Virus record (IMG/VR): IMGVR_UViG_3300028920_000022
Span: 372,001-436,000 of that record
Direction: 5' to 3' (one strand)
Length of the DNA: 64,000 nucleotides
Of the stretch, positions 10,629-58,212 are shown piece after piece (within the stretch, counting starts at the first letter, position 1; each line of letters starts with the position of its first letter). The position numbers and the translations under genes were made by a program. Under the pieces are notes generated by a model. The model ran no database searches and was not told where the DNA came from. It was given only the letters and a program-made list of their open reading frames with translations.

Positions 10629-12098
10629 ATGCCCGCAAAAGTTCAAAAAACTCCTTTGCTTAAGGAAGGCGAATATACCATAGCCGATGTTTCAGATTGG
10701 AACTTTTTTGATCTTTCAGGCGAAAACGCCCACACTTTTGGCACGTCCAACAAACAATATCACATAGAAATGCACATAGGTAAAAATGGTAAGTGTCAGA
10801 TCTTTACCATGTTTGGTCCAACCGGGGGTACCCAAACTAAAAATTGGCGCTACTTTGACTCTGAAGTTGCCGCCCGTAAAGAATTGGCGTCAATGAAGAA
10901 AAAAAGAGTCAAAAAGAATTATAAAGAAATTAAAGTTGCCATTCGTGCTTACGGTACCGAAGAGGCTAAAAAGATCACTCAAGCTGTTGAGTTCAACAAC
11001 TCAGATATAAAACCCTCCAGCAATCTCCATAAAGAAACCCAACGATTAATGCGGGTTCTCTTTGGTGCAACCGAACACTTCGTTGTTACCACTTTGCGCT
11101 GCCCTCTGGGTCAATTAACCAATGAACAAGTAGATGAGGGTTATAAACGCCTAAATGAAGCAAAAAAATTAATTTCTAATGGTTCACCAAATGCTAAACG
11201 GATTGAAACACTTACCAACGAATTTTATGCTATTATCCCCCACAATTTAGGAGCCGGTGCGAGAGGTAAAATGATGAACCTCTTGCTGGATACTCCACAA
11301 AAGATTGCTCAAAAAGAATATGATTTAGAAACATTATTGGACGCCAAATCGGTTGGAGCTGCCCTGGAAAAGGGCTCAACCGTTGATGATCAATATAATG
11401 AATTGAATACCGATTTTGATTTTATTGATCATAACGATCCTTTATTTCAATGGGTAAATAGGATTGTTTTGGATACTCGGGCACACAACCATAATACTTT
11501 GGGTAAGATTACAGTATTGAATGCTTGGAAATATAATCGTCATGGCGAGAGAAACGTTTTTGAAAAGAGGATGAAAGAGATTGCCAAGGAGTGTAAAAAG
11601 CCGTTTACGCCTAAAGTTTTGAGGAATGCTGTTGAAAATCGGTTAGATATTCCAGATGGACAGGGAGGATTATATAAAAAGGCTAATGTGTTGCCATTAT
11701 TTCATGGAACCCGGACTCAGAACATTGCTGGAATTACGAAGAAGGGATTGTTGATAAGACCTTCGGGTGTGATTTTAGAAGGTTCATGCTACGGTAGTGG
11801 TGTTTATTATGCAAACAACAGTAGCAAAACGATCAACTATAGTAGTGTTCGGGGGGCTTATTATACCCACGGCAAAGACGATCGTGGTTATATATTCATA
11901 GTAGATTGCGTTCTAGGCGACACTTATGTTCCAACTACTGCAGCAAACTACACCAAGGGTAATATTTCCCCCAACCATTCAGTGTGGGCAAAGGGAGGAT
12001 ACTCTGGCGTAATTAATGATGAGTATGTGTTGTTGGACATAAATCAGCATAATATTAGATACTTAGTGGAGTTTACTTGCGGGAAAAATGGAATATAG
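10629..12098 (+). CDS. Poly(ADP-ribose) polymerase-like protein 1 (WGR + regulatory + catalytic domains)
   Basis: WGR-like N-terminus, CPLGQL, FYAIIPH regulatory domain, catalytic FHGT / YGSGVYYA / NDEYV (H-Y-E). Confidence 0.9.
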   Translation: MPAKVQKTPLLKEGEYTIADVSDWNFFDLSGENAHTFGTSNKQYHIEMHIGKNGKCQIFTMFGPTGGTQTKNWRYFDSEVAARKELASMKKKRVKKNYKEIKVAIRAYGTEEAKKITQAVEFNNSDIKPSSNLHKETQRLMRVLFGATEHFVVTTLRCPLGQLTNEQVDEGYKRLNEAKKLISNGSPNAKRIETLTNEFYAIIPHNLGAGARGKMMNLLLDTPQKIAQKEYDLETLLDAKSVGAALEKGSTVDDQYNELNTDFDFIDHNDPLFQWVNRIVLDTRAHNHNTLGKITVLNAWKYNRHGERNVFEKRMKEIAKECKKPFTPKVLRNAVENRLDIPDGQGGLYKKANVLPLFHGTRTQNIAGITKKGLLIRPSGVILEGSCYGSGVYYANNSSKTINYSSVRGAYYTHGKDDRGYIFIVDCVLGDTYVPTTAANYTKGNISPNHSVWAKGGYSGVINDEYVLLDINQHNIRYLVEFTCGKNGI

Positions 12099-13651
12099 AA
12101 AAAGTTAGAAAGCTTGTGGAAAAGCGTGGTGGAAAACTTTTAACGACCGAATATATTAATCAACACAAAAAGCTAGATGTTATTTGTGAAAAGGGACATT
12201 TATGGCACCCATCTGGAGAAGCATTACGAAAGGATCGTTGGTGTTCTTTTTGTCGTGGTAGCAGAATTAGCAAATCCAAAATAGATCCCAACAAAATATA
12301 CAAAATAAAGCAGGTAGCTAAGGAACGGGGAGGCGAATGTCTGTCGGATATTTATGTCAGTGCGTTGGCAAAATTAAAATTCAAGTGTAAAAATGGTCAC
12401 ATCTGGGAATCTAATTATAAATCTGTTTATAATAGAGGGTCTTGGTGTCCAATATGTTGTTTTAACCCCTCAATTTATCCCCAAAAGGGGGAAACATTTG
12501 TTCAGGCGTCACTAAAGCATGCAGCAAATATAGCCAAGAAAAGGGGTGGAAAATGTTTATCGATGGATGCTAAGACGTTGGGAAAATTAAGGTGGCGATG
12601 CGATCAGGGGCATGAGTGGAAAGCCACATATGCCAATGTTATTAATGGATCTTGGTGTCCCACATGTAAAATAACAATTTCCGAATACATTTGTAAGGGA
12701 TATTTGGAACACTTGTTTGGCGCTAAATTTTTAAAAATGAGACCACGATGGTTAAAAAACCCACACGGTGGATTATTAGAGTTGGATGGTTATTGTGAGG
12801 AGCTAGGTGTTGCCTTTGAGCATAACGGTAGGCAACATTATCATCAAGCGTGGTTTCAAACAGAATACGAATTTACCTCTCTTCAAAAACGCGATAAAGT
12901 AAAAAAAGAATTATGCGAACAAAACGGGGTTAAATTAATTATTATTCCAGCCATTGCTTATATGACTGAAATTGAGGATTTGCCCAAAGTAATAAAGGAA
13001 GAGTTTGTCAGGTTAAATATTAATAACATAAAAACATTTCCGCCGGTAAAAGAAGCAATAGACATTGATCAATATTATATGGTAAATTGGGATGATTATT
13101 TTGAGAAAATAAAGTCTATTATGGAATCGCATGGATGGGAGTGTTTATCCAAGGAATATAGGGGCGGTTTATATAAGTTAAAAATAAAATGCAATAAAGG
13201 ACATGTTTTTGACGAGTTTCCATGCAATATCAAAAAGTGGAAAGGGTGTCTAGAGTGTAAAAAAGAGAGAAACAGAGAGTCCATGCTTGTCAAAGCTTAC
13301 GCATTAGCAAAGAATCGGGGCGGAGAATGTTTATCTTCTGAATACAAAAACAACCATTCAAAGATGTTGTGGAAATGTAGTTGTGGCAATATTTGGGAAG
13401 CCAGTTACAATTGTATTCAGCGAGGAACGTGGTGTCCTCCATGTTCTATTATAAGGCGGGCAAACAAAAAACGACTGGGTATAGATGTTTATCAAAAAGC
13501 GGCGAAGAAAAAGGGAGGAAAATGTCTTTCCAAGGAAGTAAGTAGTTGTTTTGACGAGATAGAATTCGAGTGTGGGCAAGGACATAGATGGTTTGCGCGA
13601 GCGGATCAAGTGAAAAATACGGACAGCTGGTGTCCGAAATGCAACTACTAA
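12077..13651 (+). CDS. Zn-ribbon-repeat PD-(D/E)xK endonuclease (homing-endonuclease-like)
   Basis: Repeated C..GH.W....WCP.C units around LELDGYCEELGVAFEHNGRQHY. Confidence 0.75.
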   Translation: MREKWNIEKVRKLVEKRGGKLLTTEYINQHKKLDVICEKGHLWHPSGEALRKDRWCSFCRGSRISKSKIDPNKIYKIKQVAKERGGECLSDIYVSALAKLKFKCKNGHIWESNYKSVYNRGSWCPICCFNPSIYPQKGETFVQASLKHAANIAKKRGGKCLSMDAKTLGKLRWRCDQGHEWKATYANVINGSWCPTCKITISEYICKGYLEHLFGAKFLKMRPRWLKNPHGGLLELDGYCEELGVAFEHNGRQHYHQAWFQTEYEFTSLQKRDKVKKELCEQNGVKLIIIPAIAYMTEIEDLPKVIKEEFVRLNINNIKTFPPVKEAIDIDQYYMVNWDDYFEKIKSIMESHGWECLSKEYRGGLYKLKIKCNKGHVFDEFPCNIKKWKGCLECKKERNRESMLVKAYALAKNRGGECLSSEYKNNHSKMLWKCSCGNIWEASYNCIQRGTWCPPCSIIRRANKKRLGIDVYQKAAKKKGGKCLSKEVSSCFDEIEFECGQGHRWFARADQVKNTDSWCPKCNY

Positions 13652-13860
13652 CTGATTTTTTAACCAAGCGCGGACACACAATAGACACACCATTACATGG
13701 GGTTTGGCGTATTTTTTGCGTCAATTGTGAACATTATTTCTATTACGATGAAGAGGGCATTTGGTATGGGGTGGATCTTGGCAAGTATTCAATATATTTG
13801 CGATACGATATTAACCCGATACCATGCAAAGAATTAATCATTCGGGATATCATCAAATGA
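13639..13860 (+). CDS. Small GH-CxxC protein with IIxxII tail, copy 1
   Basis: RGH...CVNC...CKELIIRDIIK*; start moved to the internal ATG. Confidence 0.7.
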   Translation: MQLLTDFLTKRGHTIDTPLHGVWRIFCVNCEHYFYYDEEGIWYGVDLGKYSIYLRYDINPIPCKELIIRDIIK

Positions 13861-14135
13861 TCAACGAACTTAAAAACTTCAAACAGTTTTTGTGTAATTT
13901 AGGTCACATACTGGTCGAGTTTGATATTGGTAGCGTACCTATAGACCCTGATGGATATTTTAAACCAGGAACATATCTTAGATGTGTTGAATGTGATTAT
14001 ATTTTTTGTTTATTGGACGGGGAAAATCACACTGATGTTTGGCATTGTTTACACAGTTGTTTACCGGAATCTTGGAATAAATATACTGAGCAACAAACCT
14101 GCAAAGAGTTGATTATCAAAAGCATAATCAAATGA
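13857..14135 (+). CDS. Small GH-CxxC protein with IIxxII tail, copy 2
   Basis: LGH...CVEC...CKELIIKSIIK*; ATGA overlap. Confidence 0.75.
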   Translation: MINELKNFKQFLCNLGHILVEFDIGSVPIDPDGYFKPGTYLRCVECDYIFCLLDGENHTDVWHCLHSCLPESWNKYTEQQTCKELIIKSIIK

Positions 14136-14431
14136 CCCACGAAGTAAAACAATTCATAAAGTTTTTGTCAGATTTGGGACACAAACCGTACAAGTTTGAT
14201 GTTTCAGCTGGTCTAAAATATGGACATTATTTCAAATGTAGTGAATGCGACTATGTTTTTTGCTTGTTATTAGAGAATTATGACGATACACATTATCACT
14301 ACAACTATGGAAGATATTGGTTTAGTTATTACCCAAGTTTTCCAGAAAGCTGGCGGTATAATAATTATGTGAACCCAGAATTGGAGCCAACAAGCTGTGC
14401 GGATATAATAATCAAAAACATAATAACATGA
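14132..14431 (+). CDS. Small GH-CxxC protein with IIxxII tail, copy 3
   Basis: LGH...CSEC...CADIIIKNIIT*. Confidence 0.75.
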   Translation: MTHEVKQFIKFLSDLGHKPYKFDVSAGLKYGHYFKCSECDYVFCLLLENYDDTHYHYNYGRYWFSYYPSFPESWRYNNYVNPELEPTSCADIIIKNIIT

Positions 14432-14697
14432 TTTCTTTCCAAAACCTATACAAACTAGGACACAAACTAAATACGTTTGATATTTCTAGTATAGTTTTAA
14501 CGGGTGTTCGGTTTAAACCTGGAATATATCTAAAATGCAGTGAGTGTGGACATATTTTCTATTTACTGAACAAAGCTAATTGTGATACAGATATTTGGTT
14601 TTGTGCGAGTAATGATATGCTTGATGGGTGGGATCTGTATAATCGCGGGAAACCGCCGACTTGCGATGAGTTAGTGATCAAAGAAATTATTAAATGA
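14428..14697 (+). CDS. Small GH-CxxC protein with IIxxII tail, copy 4
   Basis: LGH...CSEC...CDELVIKEIIK*. Confidence 0.75.
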   Translation: MISFQNLYKLGHKLNTFDISSIVLTGVRFKPGIYLKCSECGHIFYLLNKANCDTDIWFCASNDMLDGWDLYNRGKPPTCDELVIKEIIK

Positions 14698-14939
14698 CAG
14701 CTTTAGAAAAACTCCATATCGATGGGCACGACGTAGTAGAAACGGATCTTTCACACATACCACATTTAAATATAGGTTTTAATATTGGCAAGTATGTTTT
14801 GTGCAATAAGTGTGATCATATTTTTTGTGTTATAAATAATGATGTATGGTTTTGTGTTAGTCGCGAATTAATATATGGTTGGCGAAAATATAAAAAACAT
14901 ACGTGCAAAGAGCTTATTATTCAGGAAATTATCAAATGA
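14694..14939 (+). CDS. Small GH-CxxC protein with IIxxII tail, copy 5
   Basis: DGH...CNKC...CKELIIQEIIK*. Confidence 0.75.
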   Translation: MTALEKLHIDGHDVVETDLSHIPHLNIGFNIGKYVLCNKCDHIFCVINNDVWFCVSRELIYGWRKYKKHTCKELIIQEIIK

Positions 14940-15184
14940 TAACATTAGAAAGCCTGTCCACATTTGGTCATGAATTAACCGAGATAGACGTTTCTTCGCT
15001 AGAGTGGCTAAACTCCGGCACATATCTAAAATGTCAAAAATGCGATTATATTTTTTGTTTGTTGGATGGTGCAGAACAGAGTAGCGAGATTTGGTTTGGT
15101 AATGATTTAACTTACGGCTGGAAATTATACAACAATTTTCTGTACACTTGCGATGAATTAATAATCAAAGATGTTATCAAATGA
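14936..15184 (+). CDS. Small GH-CxxC protein with IIxxII tail, copy 6
   Basis: FGH...CQKC...CDELIIKDVIK*. Confidence 0.75.
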   Translation: MITLESLSTFGHELTEIDVSSLEWLNSGTYLKCQKCDYIFCLLDGAEQSSEIWFGNDLTYGWKLYNNFLYTCDELIIKDVIK

Positions 15185-15414
15185 GCCCAGAAGACGAAGT
15201 TAAGGAGATTCTTTCTGAGAAGGGACATAATATAATATTTGTGGAAGAATCAGTAAACGGAACTTGGTTTAAGTGTGTTAACTGTGGTTATTTTTTCCAC
15301 ATTTCTAAAAATAACATTACAATTTGGGTTTACGGAGAAAACATATATCCTTTTTTGTATGACCGTGATACAAATACCTGCAATGATTTTATCATCAAAA
15401 GCATAATTAAGTAA
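15181..15414 (+). CDS. Small GH-CxxC protein with IIxxII tail, copy 7
   Basis: KGH...CVNC...CNDFIIKSIIK*. Confidence 0.75.
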   Translation: MSPEDEVKEILSEKGHNIIFVEESVNGTWFKCVNCGYFFHISKNNITIWVYGENIYPFLYDRDTNTCNDFIIKSIIK

Positions 15415-15659
15415 TGGATTTTCATAATTTTCTGAAGGAAAGAAATCATACAGTTTCTTTTTATTGCGCCAAATACGATCAACAGTTTTTTGTTTGTTCA
15501 AAATGTGGATATTATTTTTATCAAAACGTGACTTTTAGGGATATAAATCAAATTTGGTTTTGCGATGACATTGACGGATGGTTTACGTTGTACAACGCCA
15601 CCGATGATAGGTTTAAACTAACTTGTGATGAGTTTATAATTATGGGTATTATAAAGTGA
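15414..15659 (+). CDS. Small (G)H-CxxC protein with IIxxII tail, copy 8
   Basis: RNH...CSKC...CDEFIIMGIIK*. Confidence 0.75.
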   Translation: MDFHNFLKERNHTVSFYCAKYDQQFFVCSKCGYYFYQNVTFRDINQIWFCDDIDGWFTLYNATDDRFKLTCDEFIIMGIIK

Positions 15660-15877
15660 TCAGTCAAGATTTTTATTCCACACTTTCTGCTTTGGGACAT
15701 AGTGTCACATTTGATTCTTCAATTATAAACGGGTTTTGGGTACGGTGTTTGAAATGCGATTGTTTATTCTATTGTGGGCAGGCGGAACAGAAAATTTTGA
15801 TAATTTTTGCTGATGGTTTTCAAGTATATAATGGAGAAACATGTTTAGAGTTGACTATTAAGGAAATCATCGAGTGA
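15656..15877 (+). CDS. Small GH-CxxC protein with IIxxII tail, copy 9
   Basis: LGH...CLKC...CLELTIKEIIE*. Confidence 0.75.
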   Translation: MISQDFYSTLSALGHSVTFDSSIINGFWVRCLKCDCLFYCGQAEQKILIIFADGFQVYNGETCLELTIKEIIE

Positions 15878-16122
15878 AAAATAGTTTAGAAGCGTTTCTT
15901 TCTGAACGTGGTCACAAAGTTATGGCGTGGGAATCAGAATCTCTTAAACACCTATCTCGTGGTGTATATGTAAAGTGTGTCAAATGTGAGTGCGTATTTG
16001 CTAAATTATTTAATAGTATAGAGTTTAATCGAATTTGGTTAAAGCCGGCAAAATTTTTCGGGTGGCAGGTATACGAGGCTGAGACTTGTGATGATATGAT
16101 TATTAAGGAAATAATTGAATGA
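15874..16122 (+). CDS. Small GH-CxxC protein with IIxxII tail, copy 10
   Basis: RGH...CVKC...CDDMIIKEIIE*. Confidence 0.75.
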   Translation: MKNSLEAFLSERGHKVMAWESESLKHLSRGVYVKCVKCECVFAKLFNSIEFNRIWLKPAKFFGWQVYEAETCDDMIIKEIIE

Positions 16123-16334
16123 TTACTAAACAGGAATTTTTGACCACGATTGCTCCGGCGGGACATTCTATCGAATGGTTTTCTGAAAATGTTTGTCACT
16201 GTGTAGTTTGTGGTTGTAGCTTTTTGGTCTCAAATAGTGGCTGGATGTTGATATCGATTGATGGTGGGCGAAATTATATTAACCACACCAACTTAACTTG
16301 CAGCCAATTAATAATACGAGCAATAATCGAATGA
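16119..16334 (+). CDS. Small GH-CxxC protein with IIxxII tail, copy 11
   Basis: AGH...CVVC...CSQLIIRAIIE*. Confidence 0.75.
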   Translation: MITKQEFLTTIAPAGHSIEWFSENVCHCVVCGCSFLVSNSGWMLISIDGGRNYINHTNLTCSQLIIRAIIE

Positions 16335-16561
16335 AGAATTATCTGAAAACATATTTGCAAAGAAAAGGGCATAAAGATTTAGAATGTCGTTTCGAGAATG
16401 CAGACGGTGTTGTTTTTCTTTGTCGAGACTGTAGTTGGTTGTTTCTTTATGATGGTTCCAACATAGCTATACACGGGTTTACAAATATTGTCATGGTTGA
16501 TGATTATGATGACAATTCCCCCTCTTGCCAGGAACTAATAATCAGAGACATTGTCACCTAA
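16331..16561 (+). CDS. Small GH-CxxC protein with IIxxII tail, copy 12
   Basis: KGH...CRDC...CQELIIRDIVT*. Confidence 0.75.
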   Translation: MKNYLKTYLQRKGHKDLECRFENADGVVFLCRDCSWLFLYDGSNIAIHGFTNIVMVDDYDDNSPSCQELIIRDIVT

Positions 16562-16826
16562 AATATTAACTCACAATGGACACGTAGGTGTCTTTTTGGA
16601 ACACTCTAGTTTGAGTGGTTTGGGAACAACTATTCCCATTGATGTGTACAAATGTCACAAATGCGAGCTTTGTTTCATAAAGGATGTTGAACATTTTTTC
16701 GCAGTGGTAAAGAGATTTTGGAGTCACAACAAATATGATTATTTTTGGGCACAATACGATTATCCAAAACCTGGAGTGTTATGGGCATGTGACGAAAAAG
16801 ATCGAATAATCCAAGAAATCATTTGA
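16551..16826 (+). CDS. Small GH-CxxC protein with IIxxII tail, copy 13
   Basis: NGH...CHKC...CDEKDRIIQEII*. Confidence 0.7.
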   Translation: MSPKILTHNGHVGVFLEHSSLSGLGTTIPIDVYKCHKCELCFIKDVEHFFAVVKRFWSHNKYDYFWAQYDYPKPGVLWACDEKDRIIQEII

Positions 16827-24325: not shown

Positions 24326-24411
24326 TGCGGGAATGTAGCAAAGGCGGCTAGCCAGTCTCATAAGCTGGCGTCCATTGATCGCGAAGGGTTCGATTCCCTC
24401 TCCCGCAACCA
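24326..24411 (+). tRNA. tRNA with CAT anticodon (Met or Ile2), encoded CCA, long variable region
   Basis: TGCGGGA/TCCCGCA-A-CCA; CCAGT-CTCATAA-GCTGG; GGTTCGATTCC. Confidence 0.85.
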
Positions 24412-24468: not shown

Positions 24469-25875
24469 ATGGGAAAATTGAAGGTGTGGAAAGTTGGCGC
24501 AGCTGGAGAACCCAGTTTTCCTGCCAATTTTGAGGTGGCTAAAAAAGCCGTTCTCCAAGTTACAGATATTAAAACAAATCGTAATAAGTATTATGCCATA
24601 GAACTACACTCTGCTGGCAATAAATATAGAGTGTTTACTCATTATGGTCGAACAGATGATCTGGACACGAATCCTAATGCTGGGGTGCGCGAGGTTCGTT
24701 ACGGCAACTTGTCTGAATGTGAAGCAACCTATCATCAGATATATAGTCAAAAAACTAGCGCAAGAAAAGGATATAAGGAACTTAGCTTAGCATCTTCGCG
24801 TATTGGTTCGTCTCAATCGGTTGGTAAATCTAGCGGACATGTTGATGACAAAACGCTTGAAAAACTAAACAACGGTAACAAGAAAGTGATAAAAAACAAA
24901 GTTTCTACACTTTCTCCCGTTGTACAAGATTTTGTTTCTTATATTTATGCTGAAGCCACTAATGCCCTAACTAGCACAATTAATGCCAGCATTACCGCTA
25001 ATGGTATCGAAACGCCTCTTGGTGTTTTGACACTGGGTCAGATTGATAAGGGGCAAAAGATTTTGGATGAGCTTTATGATTTATTCAATTCAAAAAAGAG
25101 CCAATCAATACGTGACCATATGGTAGAACTGAGTGGTGAGTTTTATACAGTAATTCCTCACAGAATAGGCAGAACTAGGGCTGCTGTAGAAGCTGCTGTT
25201 ATTGATAGTTTAGTAGATTTTAATGCTAAGCAAGACACATTACAACTTATGCGAGACATGTTAAGTGTTTCGGGTAAAGACTCCCAGGTACTTATTAACC
25301 CTGAAATTGATAAGAAATATAATGCTTTGGGTTGCGAAATTAAAACTGTAGATAATAAAAAGTATCAAGAATTGAAGGATTATGTAGAGAAATCACAAAT
25401 AAAAACCAGAAATATTAAAGTAAAGAATATATATTCATTATGCAGACCAGAAGAACAAAAGGTTTTTGCTGATAATATTTCAAATAAACGATTACTTTTT
25501 CACGGTTCTAGGGCAAAAAACTGGGTAGGTATTCTTTCCCGTGGTTTGTTGCTTCCTAAGATTGTGGTTAGCTTGGGTGTAAACCGAACTGACGCAGGTT
25601 GGCTTGGAAATGGTATTTATTTCGGAGATGCTGTTTGCACTACATTATACTACACGTCTCCTGGAAGGCAGAGAAACACCCGGATGATGGCGATAGCGAA
25701 TGTAGCATTAGGAAAGATGAAGGATTTTAATAGAATTACGTATGGATTAAAAGGACCACCCGCTGGATATCATAGTTGTCATGGTGTACGTGGAACCTCA
25801 TTTGCAGATGATGAATATGTAATTTATGACCAGAAACAGCAGAAACTTGAGTATTTAGTGGAGTATGTGTCATGA
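24469..25875 (+). CDS. Poly(ADP-ribose) polymerase-like protein 2 (WGR + regulatory + catalytic domains)
   Basis: NRNKYY...YGR WGR domain, TPLGVL, FYTVIPH, LFHGSR / LGNGIYF / DDEYVIY. Confidence 0.92.
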   Translation: MGKLKVWKVGAAGEPSFPANFEVAKKAVLQVTDIKTNRNKYYAIELHSAGNKYRVFTHYGRTDDLDTNPNAGVREVRYGNLSECEATYHQIYSQKTSARKGYKELSLASSRIGSSQSVGKSSGHVDDKTLEKLNNGNKKVIKNKVSTLSPVVQDFVSYIYAEATNALTSTINASITANGIETPLGVLTLGQIDKGQKILDELYDLFNSKKSQSIRDHMVELSGEFYTVIPHRIGRTRAAVEAAVIDSLVDFNAKQDTLQLMRDMLSVSGKDSQVLINPEIDKKYNALGCEIKTVDNKKYQELKDYVEKSQIKTRNIKVKNIYSLCRPEEQKVFADNISNKRLLFHGSRAKNWVGILSRGLLLPKIVVSLGVNRTDAGWLGNGIYFGDAVCTTLYYTSPGRQRNTRMMAIANVALGKMKDFNRITYGLKGPPAGYHSCHGVRGTSFADDEYVIYDQKQQKLEYLVEYVS

Positions 25876-27060: not shown

Positions 27061-27303
27061 ATGAGAAATCACAGTTTCATTCGGGTGGAAACACCACAAA
27101 GTTACTCCGCTCACAAAACAGCACAGTATTATAGATGTCAAAGATGTAATTTATTAATGTATGACACTGGCATTTCTCGTTACGTTTCTTGTCTGCATGA
27201 TACTGGCATTATGCCAACGCCGCTTATGTCGCCAGACACAATAGACTGTGAAATGCAAGAAATAATATGGAAAGAAGAAATTATTAAGGACATAATAGAA
27301 TGA
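27061..27303 (+). CDS. H-CxxC small protein with IIKDIIE tail
   Basis: NH...YYRCQRC...EEIIKDIIE*. Confidence 0.7.
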   Translation: MRNHSFIRVETPQSYSAHKTAQYYRCQRCNLLMYDTGISRYVSCLHDTGIMPTPLMSPDTIDCEMQEIIWKEEIIKDIIE

Positions 27304-27548
27304 AACTTGGCACCCACGATTTTGTTGAAATATGCGAACCTATAAATAGTCCAATTTTTAACGCAGAATGTCAATATTATCGATGTATACGATGTAATCT
27401 TTTGATTTATAAAAGTAAGCTTTATCATCCGGGAGAGTGTGTTACATCATTGGTAGAGAGTAGTAGAACAGTCTCACCAGATAGTATCAACTGTGCCGAA
27501 CAAGAGAAAAAGTTTCGGTTACAATCGATTAAGGACATAATAGAATGA
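27300..27548 (+). CDS. H-CxxC small protein with IKDIIE tail
   Basis: GTH...YYRCIRC...QSIKDIIE*. Confidence 0.7.
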   Translation: MKLGTHDFVEICEPINSPIFNAECQYYRCIRCNLLIYKSKLYHPGECVTSLVESSRTVSPDSINCAEQEKKFRLQSIKDIIE

Positions 27549-39123: not shown

Positions 39124-39801
39124 ATGACTAAAATAGAACTAGCTCAAACTATAGAACATACCATATTGAAAGCTGGCGCTACAGAAAGAGAAGTGCGCAA
39201 GGTTCTCAATGAGGTAGAAGAGTTTGGTTTTTGGGGCGCCTGTGTAAACCCTATTTATGTAAAATTAGCTAGAAAAGTACTATCAGAACATTTTCATGTT
39301 ATTACTGTGGTGAATTTCCCACTCGGAGCGTCTACTCTTTTTTCAGTTTGTGAGGATATGGCAAAAGCCTTTGATCATGGGGCTGACGAAATAGATATTG
39401 TAGCGCCACTTAATTTAGCTAAAGAACATAAATGGGATGCGCTTGGTGGATTTTTTGATTTAATACGAGATAAATTTATATTATCTAATAACTTAAAAGT
39501 TATTTTAGAAACAGGATTATTCACTCACAACGAACTATATGATTTAGTGGATGCTGTTTCTCCCATAGGTTTTTTAAAAACTTCTACAGGTTTTGGTCCA
39601 AGAGGAGCGTCGGTCACTGACATACAGTTTTTGTCAAATGTACTGAAAAGAAGAGAAAACTACACAAATACTAAAATTAAAGCATCTGGTGGTATAAAGA
39701 ACACCGAACAAGCCATTTCAATGATAGAAGCCGGAGCTTCTAGAATTGGAACATCTAGCGGAGTAGAGATTATTCGAGGTTTAGATGACAAAAATACTTA
39801 A
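39124..39801 (+). CDS. deoC: Deoxyribose-phosphate aldolase
   Basis: IEHTILK, VVNFPLG, GADEIDIV, KVILETG, FLKTSTGF, IKASGGI, RIGTS. Confidence 0.93.
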   Translation: MTKIELAQTIEHTILKAGATEREVRKVLNEVEEFGFWGACVNPIYVKLARKVLSEHFHVITVVNFPLGASTLFSVCEDMAKAFDHGADEIDIVAPLNLAKEHKWDALGGFFDLIRDKFILSNNLKVILETGLFTHNELYDLVDAVSPIGFLKTSTGFGPRGASVTDIQFLSNVLKRRENYTNTKIKASGGIKNTEQAISMIEAGASRIGTSSGVEIIRGLDDKNT

Positions 39802-49999: not shown

Positions 50000-50254
50000 T
50001 TATGTAATTATGTTCTGAATTATAAAATCATTACAATTTATTTGTTCAGGATTCAATGCCGTAGCAATACTTATCTGAGAAATATAAAAATTTATTTCAT
50101 TTTGAAATATTCCTTTAAATATTATTAATCCGCAATTCTGGCATTGCCAATATTTTGGACGAATATCGTTAATCAAATTAATACCATCATTAAGTTTTGC
50201 AACCTCTTCTGCTGTTAACTCCTTCAGTTCGTGTGTACCTATTTTGAGACTCAT
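50000..50254 (-). CDS. H-CxxC small protein with IIQNIIT tail
   Basis: GTH...CQNC...CNDFIIQNIIT*. Confidence 0.7.
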   Translation of the reverse strand: MSLKIGTHELKELTAEEVAKLNDGINLINDIRPKYWQCQNCGLIIFKGIFQNEINFYISQISIATALNPEQINCNDFIIQNIIT

Positions 50255-50658
50255 TCTATTATATCTTTGATTATTTTTTCATTTTCGGTTAAAAATTCTT
50301 CTCTATACACGTTATCTGCTACCCACGATACTCTTAAAGAATTGCTATGAGAATATCCAGTTAAGATAGCGTTACAAACATGGGTAATATATTTTTTATG
50401 ATTTTCTTTCCAACCGAACATAAAATGAAATTTATTATCCACACTGGTTCCACGAAAACGTTCTTTTACAAAATGTTCGATATCAAAGTTTTCGTCAAAT
50501 AAAATCAAACCTTCTAATTCACCATGAACATCTTCATATCTTCCGCAATATTCGACGGTCATGGTGAGGCTATAAGCCCAACCGATAATTTCTTCGTTGT
50601 ACAGTACTTGAACACTATTCGATAATGTAGCGAATGTCGATATTAGTTCTACAGGCAT
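50251..50658 (-). CDS. Hypothetical protein with IIKDIIE tail
   Basis: Ends ENEKIIKDIIE*; no CxxC. Confidence 0.65.
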   Translation of the reverse strand: MPVELISTFATLSNSVQVLYNEEIIGWAYSLTMTVEYCGRYEDVHGELEGLILFDENFDIEHFVKERFRGTSVDNKFHFMFGWKENHKKYITHVCNAILTGYSHSNSLRVSWVADNVYREEFLTENEKIIKDIIE

Positions 50659-51001
50659 CGCACAGAGTACGATGCCAGCTTAATTCGTCTCGAAGTTTTC
50701 CTGGTTTACCACAATCTTCGCAAACGTGGTCGCTTTTATTTTCGGCTTCCATAACCAAATCTTGAACTATTTTAATTTCTTGTTCCGTTACATTTGGGTA
50801 ACTTAAATATCTATAACCAAATCTCAAACCTCCCAACTTTTCTTTAATGTAGGTAGCTTCAATTTTAATATCTGTTTTTTGAATTTCTATACATAATTCA
50901 CGCAGGAGTTCGTACCAACCATCTCCGCACCCTATGTAGACGTGGGATACAAAGATTTTGGGGAATTCTTGACGCAATTTGTCGGTTAATTCTGGGCTCA
51001 T
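50615..51001 (-). CDS. Conserved phage protein (GDGW...KEKLGGLR...CEDCG) with IRYIIE tail
   Basis: Motif pattern; ends CRTNIDIRYIIE*. Confidence 0.65.
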   Translation of the reverse strand: MSPELTDKLRQEFPKIFVSHVYIGCGDGWYELLRELCIEIQKTDIKIEATYIKEKLGGLRFGYRYLSYPNVTEQEIKIVQDLVMEAENKSDHVCEDCGKPGKLRDELSWHRTLCDACRTNIDIRYIIE

Positions 51002-51432
51002 TCTATTATATCCTTAATGATACGTTCGTTTTCGTTTTTTTCTACGTCTTGTGGAAGGAACTTGTAAATTATAAACATGCATGGTTCGGTCAAAATATTC
51101 TTTGCATTACACTTTTCTAAAATGTCAAAAATAATAATTATAATAATAGGCAGTAAAACTATTGGATATGCCCACAAAAGTAAAAACAGAATTATCGGCG
51201 GGTATTCTTTGAAAAAACCATTAATACCAGCCTGGACATCTGTTTTGTATATTTTGTCGCCTGCGTGTAATTCTATTTTGTATATCATTTCTGTAAGTAT
51301 AAATGCCAAACAAAAAGGGAATCCCATAAGATACATAGTCAGCAATCCCCACGGCATAGGGGACAATTTAGCAACTCCCATGCCGGCGAGGAAGAAAATG
51401 ATGCTACCTATTAGAAAGTTTCTTATTTTCAT
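50998..51432 (-). CDS. Membrane protein with IIKDIIE tail
   Basis: About three TM segments; ends ENERIIKDIIE*. Confidence 0.65.
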   Translation of the reverse strand: MKIRNFLIGSIIFFLAGMGVAKLSPMPWGLLTMYLMGFPFCLAFILTEMIYKIELHAGDKIYKTDVQAGINGFFKEYPPIILFLLLWAYPIVLLPIIIIIIFDILEKCNAKNILTEPCMFIIYKFLPQDVEKNENERIIKDIIE

Positions 51433-53072: not shown

Positions 53073-53149
53073 GGTCCCCCAGATAGGATTCGAACCTATA
53101 TTATTCACAGATTAGAAATCTGGTGCCATGTCCATTAGGCGACTGGGGG
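53073..53149 (-). tRNA. tRNA-Arg(TCT)
   Basis: On -: CCCCCAG/CTGGGGG-A acceptor, CAGA-TTTCTAA-TCTG, ATAGG-TTCGAAT-CCTAT. Confidence 0.85.
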
Positions 53150-55580: not shown

Positions 55581-56810
55581 CCTAATCAAAAAAGAAGTCC
55601 TCTACTTTTAAGTGGAGGATGAATTTTTTCTTCCGTATCTACGCATAATTATTCATATTTTTGAAGATATGTTGGTTTACAAATACAGACTCTATCCCAG
55701 TAAAAAGCAGCAAGAAAAACTGTGGATACATGCGAATAAATTGAATTGGATCTATAACCAGTTTCTAGATCAGAAAATTAACACATATAAGAATACAAAA
55801 AAGAATCTCTCCAGATACGATCTACAAGCGCAATTACCGAAACTTAAACAACGAGATCCAGTAATTAAAGAAATACATTCGCAAGTTTTGCAACAGGTGC
55901 CCAAGCGTTTAAACCAAGCATTTAAAGATTTTTACAAAAGAGGAAACAAAGGATTTCCAAACTTCAGATCTAGTTTGAACTTCTTCGGTATTTGTTATCC
56001 TCAGAGCGGATACTCTATATCAGGAAATGTCTTTAGAACGAAAATATACGGTAAAATGTCGTTTCTCAAATATCGCCCTATTCGTGGGAATATTCGACAA
56101 GTGTATATTACTAGTGAGAAAAATGGCTGGTTCATTTGTATAACAACTGACTATGAAAAAGATATTCCGAAAGCAACGGATAAGATCGGTATTGATGTAG
56201 GATTAAAGGATTTGGTTGTAACATCCGAAGGAAAACATATTAAAAACTGTAGTCATGCGAAATATTTTGACAAACAGATAGCGAAGATATCGTCAAGAAT
56301 AGATAAGAAAAAGAATAAGAAATCCAGATCTCGAAAGTTTCTGTGTAAAGTTCGGCGCAGATTGTATGATGTGAAAAAACGTAAGATTAACGATTTTCAA
56401 CATAAAGTCTCGAAGAGACTTAGTTCCGAATGCGATACAATATTTGCTGAGAATTTGAGTGTAAAGAAGATGAGTGAAGGAGAATTGCGGAACTTAAACA
56501 AGAGCATTCGAAATGCCAAATTAGCTAATTTCATTTCGTATCTATCATACAAGACCAACACATTGGTGTTGGTCAATCCGAAGAACACAAGCAAGACATG
56601 TAATCATTGTGGGAATATTCGAGAGAATTTGAAGTTATCCGAGAGGACGATTACATGTGACAAATGTGGTGAAGTATATGATAGGGACGAAAATGCCGCT
56701 AAGAACGTTTATTGCCTGGGACAGGCTATTCAGGATCTACAGTTAGAACCTGAGTATGCTGAATTATTTACGATTCAGGAAGCTCTTGCCTTAAGGCAAG
56801 AGTAGTTCAC
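55581..56810 (+). mobile_element. Non-autonomous IS200/IS605-family element (tnpB only)
   Basis: Left hairpin GTCCTCTACTT/AAGTGGAGGAT; right hairpin GCTCTTGCC/GGCAAGAGT followed by AGTTCAC; no tnpA. Left boundary is 55581 or 55587. Confidence 0.8.
55669..56805 (+). CDS. tnpB: RNA-guided endonuclease TnpB
   Basis: YKYRLYP HTH, IGIDVG (RuvC-I), FAENL (II), CNHC/CDKC Zn finger, DRDENAAKN (III). Confidence 0.92.
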   Translation: MLVYKYRLYPSKKQQEKLWIHANKLNWIYNQFLDQKINTYKNTKKNLSRYDLQAQLPKLKQRDPVIKEIHSQVLQQVPKRLNQAFKDFYKRGNKGFPNFRSSLNFFGICYPQSGYSISGNVFRTKIYGKMSFLKYRPIRGNIRQVYITSEKNGWFICITTDYEKDIPKATDKIGIDVGLKDLVVTSEGKHIKNCSHAKYFDKQIAKISSRIDKKKNKKSRSRKFLCKVRRRLYDVKKRKINDFQHKVSKRLSSECDTIFAENLSVKKMSEGELRNLNKSIRNAKLANFISYLSYKTNTLVLVNPKNTSKTCNHCGNIRENLKLSERTITCDKCGEVYDRDENAAKNVYCLGQAIQDLQLEPEYAELFTIQEALALRQE

Positions 56811-57162: not shown

Positions 57163-58212
57163 TTATACCTCAAACAACGGACATGTTCTACAAGAAAACG
57201 AATTGCTTTCCCTGGTTTTTAATAAACTATTACGGAATGCAACCATTCTTTCGTGGTTCCACACATCTTCAATAAATGAATTGCAGGAGACTACGTCCAT
57301 TCCCCGCGCCCACTCTACACAACCCTCGGCAAAAGAGCAAGGAAAAGCTTCACCCTTCCAGTTGATAAATATGGAAAACAATGAACTCTCGCAAGGCTCC
57401 ACATACTCAGCTATCTTGTCAAAATCTTTATGGTTTTTAATTGTGTTCAAGAATTTGAAAGCGGAACAACTATCGAAACCAAGCCCAACATTATTTGAAG
57501 TAGCTTGGTAAACCAAGTAAGCAAACTTGTTTTGTGACAGTTTGTGATAATGTTTCCCTCGCCCCTTTTGCTTTAAAGATAGCATAACAATAGCTTTTAC
57601 AGGATCCAAACGAGAATCTTTTACCTTGTCTCTAATGGTTTCCCGAGTAAGATTAAATGTTTCCTCACTGATCATACAATGAATGTTAATTTGTTGCAAC
57701 CCATGTTTGTGCAATTTTTGAATAGAATCGTAGCAAATATTTTTATTTTCGTAACGGCTGACAGCAACAGCCCCACAAACTTCTGCTAGTTTTGCTGCAG
57801 TTTCGTCTGAAATATCGGCAACGGTGATGTTTGGTATAACCCCATTGTTTCGACAATACCACATCATATCGAAAAGTTCGGGGTTTGATGTGGCATTACT
57901 ATCCGCACCAAAAGCAATTTGCGTTAGTATTCGGTTTTCTGTAATTTTGTCGAAAACTTTTTTAAAGGTATCCAGGGACATGTTGTTGCCAACCGGAGTA
58001 TTAGATTTGTAGCAATGTTTACAAACCTTTCCACCTACACCTTTACATATGGTGGTTACTTCGATGTCAGCAATCTCGGGAGACGGCGACATCTCCGGGT
58101 CTTCTTTTTTAGAGCTGCCCCAACGAATAAAATATCCAGAACCTTTATGGAACCGGTAATTATAATTAGGAGAGCGAACTGTTTTATGGTGTTTGCTTTC
58201 AGTAATTTTCAT
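57163..58212 (-). CDS. Radical SAM protein with SPASM/Twitch domain
   Basis: CKGVGGKVCKHC (CX7CX2C), PNIT, C-terminal PCES...PCSF...CRTCP. Confidence 0.85.
   Translation of the reverse strand: MKITESKHHKTVRSPNYNYRFHKGSGYFIRWGSSKKEDPEMSPSPEIADIEVTTICKGVGGKVCKHCYKSNTPVGNNMSLDTFKKVFDKITENRILTQIAFGADSNATSNPELFDMMWYCRNNGVIPNITVADISDETAAKLAEVCGAVAVSRYENKNICYDSIQKLHKHGLQQINIHCMISEETFNLTRETIRDKVKDSRLDPVKAIVMLSLKQKGRGKHYHKLSQNKFAYLVYQATSNNVGLGFDSCSAFKFLNTIKNHKDFDKIAEYVEPCESSLFSIFINWKGEAFPCSFAEGCVEWARGMDVVSCNSFIEDVWNHERMVAFRNSLLKTRESNSFSCRTCPLFEV

Follow-up and report, generated by a model that had tools for sequence, protein, structure and literature searches.

What do 13 small and strongly diverged genes, placed head to tail in phage DNA, encode, and to how large a family do they belong? 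They lie at 13639-16826 of the window (the whole 64,000-nucleotide stretch that was analysed), where the list of open reading frames gives 13 + strand ORFs of 71-99 amino acids (aa):

13639..13860, + strand: member 1, 73 aa; its start overlaps the 3' end of the upstream DUF4379 gene by 13 nt
13857..14135, + strand: member 2, 92 aa; ATGA overlap with member 1
14132..14431, + strand: member 3, 99 aa; ATGA overlap
14428..14697, + strand: member 4, 89 aa; ATGA overlap; protein used for the AlphaFold model
14694..14939, + strand: member 5, 81 aa; ATGA overlap
14936..15184, + strand: member 6, 82 aa; ATGA overlap; in-frame deletions of 3 and 6 nt in a sister strain
15181..15414, + strand: member 7, 77 aa; ATGA overlap; stop codon TAA
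15414..15659, + strand: member 8, 81 aa; TAATG junction; in-frame 9-nt deletion in the sister strain
15656..15877, + strand: member 9, 73 aa; GTGA overlap
15874..16122, + strand: member 10, 82 aa; GTGA overlap
16119..16334, + strand: member 11, 71 aa; ATGA overlap; recombinant relative to the sister-strain contig L015
16331..16561, + strand: member 12, 76 aa; ATGA overlap
16551..16826, + strand: member 13, 91 aa; TTG start, 11-nt overlap; final gene of the array

As read from the DNA, 10 of the 12 junctions are 4-nt overlaps (eight ATGA and two GTGA), the other two being the TAATG between members 7 and 8 and the 11-nt overlap with a TTG start between members 12 and 13, in agreement with the ATGA, GTGA and TAATG joins described in a sequence-only reading of this locus. 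An alternative ATG for member 1 is found at 13588, paralogues favouring 13639, and a GMP reductase gene lies 3' of member 13 after a 73-nt gap. No terminator-like site was found within the array on the coding strand. Such stop/start overlaps without internal terminators correspond to a translationally coupled operon, and coupling is predicted.

When the whole 459-kb genome was searched with a profile of the 13 genes, each array member was recovered with an E value of 4e-14 to 5e-29, indicating that the similarity within the array is not due to chance. Pairwise identity among the 13 proteins is 27-39%. Their alignment contains invariant M1, H, C, C, F, C and I residues and near-invariant positions at the Gly before the His and at two Ile pairs, which bears out the H-CxxC-F-C-I-I scaffold noticed earlier; the Trp placed within it belongs to an aromatic I-W/V-W motif, after the knuckle and before the last Cys, which most copies have and some lack. 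Among 387 non-identical members, the His is retained in 367 (95%), each Cys of the CxxC in 385 (99.5%) and the last Cys in 363 (94%), these four being the sole near-invariant polar residues; the other conserved polar positions form an E/K/E stripe on the last helix. Entropy exceeds 3 bits at nearly all columns outside the ligands and scaffold, and the description "constant scaffold, variable surfaces" is accurate, since all but the conserved residues are hypervariable. One His and three Cys (H-C-C-C) would provide the four ligands of a structural zinc site, and zinc binding is putative. Members without the last Cys have a Cys about four residues upstream instead ("PC-x-x-T-D"), which suggests ligand relocation in this subtype, and in one member the His is replaced by Cys.

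The AlphaFold model of member 4 (14428..14697) has a pLDDT of 85 and a pTM of 0.73. It places H12 in the loop after helix 4-9, C37 and C40 at the knuckle of a beta-hairpin (strands 32-37 and 43-47), and C79 as the first residue (N-cap) of the C-terminal helix 79-88. We propose that each gene encodes a cytoplasmic single-domain protein of ~60-100 aa, in which one structural zinc would be held by the post-helix His, the two Cys of the knuckle and the Cys capping the C-terminal helix. The zinc would act as the staple of a minimal scaffold, alpha-beta(4-5)-alpha, with an amphipathic C-terminal helix, the remaining positions and the loop lengths being free to vary. The fold comparison proposed in the sequence-only reading yielded a confident model, but no known fold: no significant match was obtained in PDB, AFDB, BFVD or the ESM Atlas, and the weak structural neighbours that resemble inhibitor or immunity proteins are at noise level (TM <0.5, Z at most 4.4). 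The modelled arrangement is like treble-clef and zinc-ribbon domains in its beta-hairpin CxxC knuckle and its ligand at a helix N-terminus, but differs in that a single ligand comes from the helix and the fourth is a distant N-terminal His.

Sequence searches also agreed with the earlier view that no named family is involved. Any one Pfam family was matched by at most 5 of 76 members, all below the gathering score, PHROGs gave matches at E>0.01 only, and nothing meaningful was matched in NCBIfam or PADLOC; the Tad3 and Phage_zn_bind models had zero matches in the genome and no known anti-defence family matched the zinc microproteins. Among the databases searched, the family appears to fit no named one. 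The DUF4379 treble-clef finger of the adjoining upstream gene (a C-x2-G-H-x-W...W-C-P-x-C repeat) was rejected as a relative, with an hhalign probability of 0.5% over 13 columns. A partial likeness was found to bacterial cell-surface repeats, units of ~51 aa with the tandem pattern "GH...C...Y-x-C-x-x-C-G-x-x-F" in BspA-type LRR or choline-binding repeat proteins bearing signal peptides, for which no Pfam family was found. Profile-profile alignment related the N-terminal half of the phage domain to this repeat (probability 96%, E 5e-9) over 35 columns only, the C-terminal half and the tail having no counterpart. Both have the G-H, a strand, the CxxCG knuckle followed by an aromatic, and one His plus three Cys. 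However, the extra Cys of the bacterial repeat precedes the knuckle and follows the His by ~10 residues, in a column not conserved in the phage family, whereas that of the phage family comes 25-45 residues later, where it caps the N-terminus of the terminal helix. Moreover, the repeats of the bacteria stand in series inside secreted proteins and are devoid of the I-I-K-D-I-I-E helix; the phage proteins are single-domain and without signal peptides on sequence inspection.

The window is part of a tailed "huge" phage of marine sediment, whose complete genome measures 458,729 bp and has genes for a DnaE-type polymerase, tail sheath, baseplate wedge and prohead protease. The profile search of phage and metagenome sequences advocated in the sequence-only reading gave 94 matches in this genome with the 13-gene profile, 112 with a broader one and about 128 after iteration. 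The family occupies 7.1% of the genome DNA and 127 of ~772 genes (~16%). Its longest run, of 72 genes, begins at a divergent strand switch at 48.6 kb of the genome, and genome-wide 79 of the 93 adjacent family junctions are 4-nt overlaps. The region from 175 to 375 kb, which holds the polymerase and virion genes, contains no member apart from one weak match, and the arrays adjoin genes of RNA-repair type and modification genes (Pnkp-like, Thg1-like, nucleotidyltransferase, methyltransferase, radical SAM and PARP-like); the family sits in accessory genome regions. Arrays were found in five IMG/VR records and about 60 further metagenome stretches, dense ones being carried by related phages of ~420-460 kb and by dozens of metagenome contigs. 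Among 185,579 species genomes there was one match to the tail pattern, without a profile match, and the family appears to be phage-restricted on the genomes searched, where it was seen in no prokaryote. About 127 of the 128 copies are intact, the broken one, in the 72-gene array (genome 39447-39650), having two in-frame TGA codons. A few copies in other phages are interrupted by stops. Besides the array, the window contains five family members, detected by the genome profile search, and two non-family ORFs (the last two lines) recognised by the shared C-terminal tail:

27061-27303 and 27300-27548, + strand: two coupled members with a lengthened C-terminal helix
42424..42690, - strand: lone member, 88 aa
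43549..44004, - strand: 151-aa member with two CxxC motifs and a "PC-x-x-T-D-D" tail variant
50000..50254, - strand: member, 84 aa, coupled to the upstream tail-only ORF
50251..50658, - strand: tail-only ORF, 135 aa, without CxxC or Pfam domain
50998..51432, - strand: non-family ORF, 144 aa, with the same tail at its end and no Pfam domain

This tail, L-[ST]-x-E-E-Φ-Φ-I-K-D-I-I-E followed by the stop codon, forms the C-terminus of at least 15 ORFs outside the family (58-495 aa) in the genome, mostly without CxxC. One encodes a radical SAM enzyme, whose alignment to its homologue in Salmonella phage Arash breaks off ~30 residues ahead of the tail. In other contigs the same tail is found on about 45 ORFs that are not family members, and several orthologous groups keep it across phages. 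Of 199 occurrences of the core motif, 120 are within two residues of a stop. The tail is conserved at the protein level, with each of the three Ile codons and six different Lys/Arg codons in use beneath its conserved residues; it is dispensable for translational coupling, because 119 four-nt overlaps are without it. As judged from sequence, the same extreme C-terminal peptide is borne by unrelated proteins, which hints at a common docking or sorting signal. Its presence on such proteins, an enzyme included, is not explained by a binder scaffold and points to a signal or hub. The array first noticed is one outpost of the ~128-copy family, and the tail common to unrelated proteins went unnoticed at that time. 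Both this tail and the scale of the family go beyond what had been read from the window alone.

Identity among the 128 paralogues reaches a maximum of 61%, with a median best match of 42%, and decays slowly with distance. Accordion duplication, as proposed in the sequence-only reading, is not upheld as a recent or transient amplification, because no pair exceeds 61%; the copies are old and form a birth-and-death family. Comparison of the array with a sister strain revealed 20 synonymous and 15 non-synonymous changes and clean indels that are all multiples of three, with one -1/+1 pair, two bases apart, restoring the frame, as expected for real genes of one diverged family. In the same comparison, member 11 proved to be an exact chimera, which joins the N-terminal half of L015 gene 1 to the C-terminal half of L015 gene 3, in frame, at the CxxC codons; nucleotide identity is 98% on either side of the joint and 26 nt are common at the knuckle. 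L015 has three genes where the window has one, at 98% flanking identity. Unequal in-frame recombination at the CxxC knuckle is thus directly seen. We propose that the family grows and shrinks through unequal homologous recombination between neighbours, of which this is one event, that halves of different copies may be shuffled because the conserved knuckle acts as an in-frame joint, and that new copies would then be retained and diverge by birth-and-death evolution. The ASFV MGF110/360/505 families, the terminal families of poxviruses and the K3L "accordion" are tandem diverged paralogues in accessory arms, with presumed roles in host range or immune evasion. The likeness to these eukaryotic DNA virus families lies in tandem paralogues of accessory arms whose copy number shifts by unequal recombination, a change present here between close strains (three genes versus one). 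The differences are that the present family belongs to a bacteriophage, that its proteins are far smaller, that its joint lies inside the ORF and gives in-frame chimeras, and that the near-identical recent copies of the poxvirus accordion are absent, so that no accordion is active.

For the whole family, we tentatively favour a co-expressed repertoire of zinc-stapled binders acting in host takeover or counter-defence, a model that we rate a little short of probable. Long coupled operons in the accessory arms would supply a mixture of many distinct small binders, each adapted to its own target in the host or in a rival, and the shared C-terminal helix would be both fold core and common handle. 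Co-expression of at least 70 paralogues from one operon could fit a structural or assembly role equally well. A possible, though rather unlikely, alternative by analogy is that the C-terminal peptide docks on one phage component (capsid interior or scaffold) or on another hub; that the zinc microproteins are its main cargo, loaded in advance and ejected along with the DNA, or concentrated at a single site of the infected cell, merits similar reserve. Encapsulins use C-terminal cargo peptides, and the scaffold proteins of P22 and herpesviruses coat-binding helices, with HK97-type shells; a short extreme C-terminal peptide on unrelated proteins is likewise found here. The non-family ORFs ending in the tail in this and other contigs, the orthologous groups that keep it, its position near stops, its conservation as protein and its dispensability for coupling all favour such docking. 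Against it, the helix is confidently placed within the domain (tail blocks at pLDDT 84-90) and seems to belong to the core of the fold, its five hydrophobic residues in the model resembling a core rather than a free peptide. Moreover, the genes that carry the tail are located away from the virion module, in early- or accessory-looking regions, whereas packaged proteins are usually late products, and to our knowledge the motif is unlike encapsulin cargo peptides.

That the proteins bind nucleic acids, either as specific transcription factors or as abundant zinc fingers with a structural role on DNA/RNA, is in our view unlikely. Bacillus phage G offers a precedent, with a ~35-copy zinc-ribbon expansion called "unprecedented"; Iyer et al. 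considered these ribbons possible transcription factors or structural DNA/RNA binders (PMC7824862). Both phages are huge (498 kb versus 459 kb here) with tens of copies of small zinc proteins, zinc being predicted here, but the present family has ~128 copies, H-C-C-C rather than C4 ligands, a C-terminal helix motif that is obligatory, and densely packed arrays with stop/start overlaps. No homology was detected, a 76-member profile giving 0 matches at E<=1 in six frames of the whole phage G genome (JN638751). Scattered weak matches of the CxxC knuckle to TFIIB, TFIIH and C2H2-type fingers, and a huge genome of ~772 genes that could employ many regulators, speak for nucleic-acid binding, but the pI (4.9-9.0, median 6.5) and net charge (-5 to +5, half of the members acidic) are unlike those of a DNA-binder family, and conserved polar positions amount to the four ligands and the E/K/E stripe, with no conserved basic surface. 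Very unlikely, and again an analogy, is an array of immunity-like proteins, small diverged alpha+beta proteins each neutralising a different toxin, nuclease or abortive-infection effector. Polymorphic toxin systems have arrays of orphan immunity genes with similar architecture, and the non-significant fold neighbours include the inhibitor or immunity proteins TNT immunity factor, Ugi-2, PliC and SMI1/KNR4; but all these scores are noise, toxin genes are not interleaved in the arrays, and the idea falls within the binder model as a special case, without a mechanism of its own. Hardly credible, and strongly disfavoured, is that the ORFs are decaying duplicates or selfish DNA without protein function. 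The broken member at genome 39447-39650 and the few stop-containing copies of other phages would fit such decay, but nearly all copies are intact despite their divergence, ligand residues are retained in 94-99% of the 387 members, the sister strain shows an excess of synonymous changes with in-frame indels, and synonymous codons vary beneath conserved residues.

Thirteen successive ORFs of 71-99 aa lie on the + strand at 13639-16826 (ORF table, window 12.5-18 kb), and their junctions, read from the DNA, consist of eight ATGA, two GTGA, one TAATG and one 11-nt overlap with a TTG start. In a MAFFT alignment of the 13 members (A1), Met1, His, Cys, Cys, Phe, Cys and Ile are invariant and the Gly preceding His and both terminal Ile pairs nearly so, with pairwise identities of merely 27-39%. 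A 13-member profile run against the whole genome recovered each member with E 4e-14 to 5e-29, far beyond chance, which bears out the array with a shared H-CxxC-C scaffold described in the sequence-only reading. Six further members, or relatives sharing only the C-terminal tail (Φ-I-K-D-I-I-E followed by a stop), were found elsewhere in the window. The array is preceded without any gap by a PARP-like gene and a multi-finger DUF4379 protein, and followed by a GMP reductase gene. A promoter scan gave noise-level results and no terminator-like site was found within the array on the coding strand. We infer that the family genes are co-expressed and that their products are cytoplasmic. The gene just upstream was recorded as follows:

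12077-13651, + strand: 524-aa protein with six DUF4379-type fingers (C-x2-G-H-x-W...W-C-P-x-C), overlapping the array start

Its fingers lie on both sides of a central region that, by eye, resembles a nuclease. As a source of the family these fingers were rejected, with an hhalign probability of 0.5% (control).

Residue conservation was analyzed over the 128 paralogues of the genome. The His is present in 122 of them, the CxxC cysteines in 127 and 128, the next Gly in 90 and the last Cys in 120; hydrophobic residues of the final helix are also conserved, and almost all other columns have an entropy above 3 bits. After pooling with 259 further non-identical members of other contigs, the four H, C, C and C positions were retained in 367, 385, 385 and 363 of 387 sequences. 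Where the last Cys is lacking, a Cys occurs instead some four residues upstream ('PC-x-x-T-D'); in one member, a Cys takes the His position. Judged from these alignments, such conservation and displacement is the behavior of putative metal ligands, and one structural zinc per domain is very probable. An AlphaFold model was obtained for member 4 from a 76-sequence alignment (A2), with a pLDDT of 85.3 and a pTM of 0.73:

14428-14697, + strand: member 4, modelled protein

The model predicts helices at residues 4-9 and 79-88 and strands at 14-16, 32-37, 43-47, 56-59 and 68-70. Among the candidate ligands, His12 is in a loop that follows the first helix, Cys37 and Cys40 belong to the knuckle of a β-hairpin, and the last helix opens with Cys79. 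This predicted arrangement would follow a logic similar to that of the treble clef, but with a distant fourth ligand. No significant structural neighbor was detected by Foldseek against PDB, AFDB clusters and BFVD, by an ESM Atlas shape search or by a wide VIA search, the best scores being at noise level (TM 0.47 for ESM Atlas, Z 4.4 for VIA). An ESM Atlas feature search returned unnamed clusters only.

The family domain was also seen as a single-copy fusion in at least five phages, behind an N-terminal domain of about 90 aa. The fusions are:

L001 11981-12505, + strand: first fusion type
L075 8391-8843, + strand: first fusion type
L074, L071 and L062: also first fusion type
L001 18499-19110, - strand: second fusion type
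L029 1536-2084, + strand: second fusion type

The AlphaFold model of the conserved fusion (N-terminal domain of about 90 aa plus family domain) had a pLDDT of 62, too poor for use.

The absence of a named family, as stated in the sequence-only reading, held in every collection searched. Pfam, PHROGs, NCBIfam and PADLOC yielded merely scattered sub-threshold zinc-knuckle matches, and a profile search of PDB sequences gave no family (best E 0.013). Tad3 and Phage_zn_bind, two leads from weak Pfam matches, were rejected. The array had no match among 50,697 GenBank phages (megablast, tblastn). A word-indexed protein search found 6 proteins only, and an exhaustive search of 1.84 billion representatives found 125, comprising about 76 short family members (16 from this genome) and about 49 long bacterial surface proteins. 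The contigs of two of the database proteins, P0027 and P0038, are short and give scant context. Signal peptides are present in the bacterial surface proteins, as are BspA-type LRRs or choline-binding repeats and tandem units of about 51 aa of the type 'GH...C...Y-x-C-x-x-C-G-K-Y-F'. Profile-profile comparison of the family with this repeat gave 96% probability (E 5e-9) over the N-terminal 35 columns only; the bacterial repeat has an extra Cys between the His and the knuckle, whereas the phage family has its Cys at the C-terminal helix. No Pfam family is dedicated to these H-C-C-C repeats, which are probably related to the phage domain in its N-terminal half and occur as 4-14 tandem copies of about 51 aa (some about 39 aa) in P0008, P0011, P0014, P0018, P0021 and P0036.

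The parent of the window is a single IMG/VR virus record of 458,729 bp, rated 100% complete, with a GC content of 39.5%; the window occupies its positions 372,001-436,000. Its ends share a 136-nt repeat, which indicates a circular or terminally redundant assembly. PHROG profiles identified a DnaE-type DNA polymerase, a prohead protease, a tail sheath and a baseplate wedge protein; therefore, this is a tailed 'huge' phage and not a giant eukaryotic virus. NCLDV capsid and T4 gp23 models gave no match, but their controls were silent too. The polymerase is at best about 32% identical to those of GenBank phages, and the public runs containing the sequence are marine sediment metagenomes only.

In this genome, the 13-gene profile matched 94 places and a 76-sequence profile 112 (E<=0.01), and an iterated profile over all ORFs converged at 128 proteins; this last figure comes from mechanically called ORFs, with its weakest members matching mostly through the tail, and the conservative count is 94-112. 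With starts refined, the median length is 81 aa and the family takes up 7.1% of the DNA; a greedy gene map assigns to it 127 of about 772 genes. Four-nucleotide overlaps were found at 79 of 93 adjacent family junctions. The members are distributed as follows:

Genome 27.4-48.6 kb, - strand: 72 members in one run, beginning right at a divergent strand switch
Genome 1.6-9.8 kb: 16 members
Window 13639-16826, + strand: 13 members, the array of the sequence-only reading
Scattered: 27 members

No member lies within genome 175-375 kb, where the replication and virion genes are, save one weak match. Should the census stand, no phage has been reported with a paralogous family anywhere near this size (about 128 copies), a sixth of the genes being devoted to a family with an unnamed fold. 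In the literature, the nearest parallel is the zinc-ribbon expansion of Bacillus phage G, with about 35 copies against about 128 here, which was called unprecedented and whose products were suggested to be transcription factors or structural DNA binders (PMC7824862). The phage G ribbons were rejected as relatives, as the family profile finds nothing in phage G.

The big arrays are bordered by radical SAM genes, a polynucleotide kinase/phosphatase, a Thg1-like enzyme, a nucleotidyltransferase and a methyltransferase, an accessory neighborhood with an RNA-repair flavor. Two of these genes, at genome 22.7-25.5 kb between two big arrays, were located on L002:

L002 2721-3464, - strand: Thg1-like guanylyltransferase
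L002 4537-5460, - strand: polynucleotide kinase/phosphatase

This pair suggests an RNA-repair module.

To look for the family in other phages, the IUPAC pattern 'C-x-[DE]-x-I-I-x-[DE]-I-I-[EK]-stop' and a second tail pattern were used, and led to four other IMG/VR records.

Profile matches (E<=0.01) in the other IMG/VR records
G001, 435 kb, complete: 20 matches
G002, 38 kb, fragment: 15 matches
G003, 85 kb, about 20% complete: 15 matches
G004, 131 kb, about 31% complete: 26 matches

The polymerase of G001 is 60% identical to that of this phage. With the same profile and cut-off, there are 112 matches here versus 20 in G001, hence a five- to six-fold lineage-specific expansion. Of the 70 stretches returned by a metagenome scan, about 60 do not belong to this genome; many have dense arrays (up to 37 members in 12.5 kb). 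In 185,579 prokaryote species (one genome each) there was a single tail-pattern match, at a locus without a profile match. A separate locus search with a subfamily alignment found no relative. The family is shown to be real, very large, phage-restricted and unnamed.

The sequence-only reading had attributed the array to accordion duplication. Identity between paralogues reaches a maximum of 61%, with a median best match of 42%, and falls slowly with distance; it is a little greater inside arrays (0.29-0.30) than between arrays (0.24). This points to old local duplications, kept and diverged, and not to a recent accordion. A sister strain, present in contigs of a second sediment run, is about 90-97% identical. 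Over the array, it differs from the window by 20 synonymous and 15 non-synonymous changes (dN/dS about 0.25, from small numbers) and by indels of 3, 6, 9 and +3 bases, along with a single -1/+1 pair that compensates itself; the listed changes leave all ligands intact. Unequal recombination was clearly observed on a 701-bp ENA contig of a sister strain, L015, which matches the window at 16078-16345 with 98% identity on both sides of one member:

16119-16334, + strand: member 11, recombinant with respect to L015

Where the window has member 11 alone, L015 has three family genes. Member 11 corresponds to the N-half of the first and the C-half of the third, an in-frame chimera joined at the CxxC codons, and the 26 nt encoding the knuckle are common to both alignments. 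This is direct evidence that unequal homologous recombination inside the ORFs generates in-frame chimeras and changes the copy number. Recent amplification is thus not upheld by the maximum identity of 61%, whereas the recombinational change of copy number is confirmed by L015: the divergence is old and unequal recombination at the knuckle is ongoing. This locus is a clear example of in-frame shuffling of domain halves at a conserved motif. One broken copy was noticed in the big array:

Genome 39431-39683, - strand: family copy with two in-frame TGA and a detached tail fragment

The tail is not confined to the family. Among all ORFs of the genome, 120 end with it, 105 from the family and 15 from outside; the core motif has 199 occurrences in total, just 79 of them internal. 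The non-family tail ORFs, at least 15 in the genome, encode 58-495 aa, mostly without CxxC. Examples, including those in the window, are:

Genome 166904-168391, + strand: non-family tail ORF
Genome 106357-106653, + strand: non-family tail ORF
Genome 457099-457569, - strand: non-family tail ORF
Window 50251-50658, - strand: tail ORF
Window 50998-51432, - strand: tail ORF

One of these proteins is a 495-aa radical SAM enzyme, for which no orthologue was found in G001. The alignment of this enzyme with its homologue from Salmonella phage Arash is confined to residues 4-465; the final 30 residues, which carry the tail, are thus an addition. Apart from this enzyme, neither Pfam nor PHROGs recognized a domain in the fusion proteins or the tail-bearing ones. 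About 45 more non-family tail ORFs were found on other contigs of the clade, and some orthologous groups keep the tail across phages. The C-terminal motif, with the extended consensus L-[ST]-x-E-E-Φ-Φ-I-K-D-I-I-E then stop, is clade-wide and common to unrelated proteins. We considered whether it could be a by-product of a downstream ribosome site or of translational coupling. This was rejected, since every Ile position uses all three Ile codons and the basic position is encoded by six different Lys/Arg codons, and since no tail accompanies 119 other four-nt overlaps of the genome. The tail is accordingly a feature of the protein rather than an element of coupling. In 99 members, the first Ile of each pair is biased to ATA and the second to ATC (34-43% versus 12% genome-wide), which hints at an extra nucleotide-level constraint.

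As to function, the family can plausibly, though tentatively, be read as a binder repertoire serving host takeover or counter-defence. Such a binder scaffold does not explain the tail on unrelated proteins, from which arises the rival in which the tail is a docking or sorting signal; it has in its favor that the tail ends a radical SAM enzyme and other unrelated proteins, and we regard it as unlikely. Nucleic-acid-binding regulators would be less likely again (across the family, pI values span 4.9 to 9.0 and net charges -5 to +5), an immunity-like special case very unlikely, and junk DNA scarcely credible. A broader proposal, somewhat improbable in our judgment, is that throughout a clade of sediment and soil phages of about 420-460 kb the tail would act as an address label across the proteome, borne by about 140 proteins per genome (about 18% of genes), the zinc microproteins being hyper-diversified cargo carried through this label, with in-frame recombination at the knuckle as the source of diversity. 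The tail might then serve to deliver or assemble the microproteins, for instance by packing them into the capsid for injection as a ready-made cocktail of effectors. The shared tail raises a directly testable question, namely whether huge phages possess protein-sorting signals. Identifying the targets would tell what so large a phage must neutralise in its host. The family further offers a library of several hundred natural variants of a predicted zinc-stapled scaffold of about 70 residues, which could serve as a binder scaffold.

Several other features of the window were noticed:

10-1386, + strand: C-terminal part of an 850-aa protein with a Laminin_G_3/ConA-like lectin domain
10629-12098, + strand: PARP-like protein with PARP regulatory and catalytic domains
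24326-24411, + strand: tRNA-Met(CAT)
24469-25875, + strand: PARP-like protein with PARP regulatory and catalytic domains and a WGR domain
53073-53149, - strand: tRNA-Arg(TCT)
55612-56805, + strand: TnpB/IS605 OrfB-type gene (OrfB_IS605 and Cas12f-like TNB domain)
58209-63392, - strand: 1727-aa protein with HEAT/LRV repeats

The lectin-domain protein may be a receptor-binding protein of foreign origin; the first 2 kb of the window have a GC content of 55% versus 39.5% for the genome. The architecture of the WGR-containing protein is best known from eukaryotic PARPs. The TnpB-type gene is on the strand opposite to its neighbors, and the HEAT/LRV protein is conceivable as a candidate peptide-binding hub. 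Only the Arg tRNA reached the Rfam threshold. A convergent strand switch lies at window ~40.6-41 kb (genome ~412.6 kb) and a divergent one at genome 48.6 kb, and the GC skew changes sign at these places.
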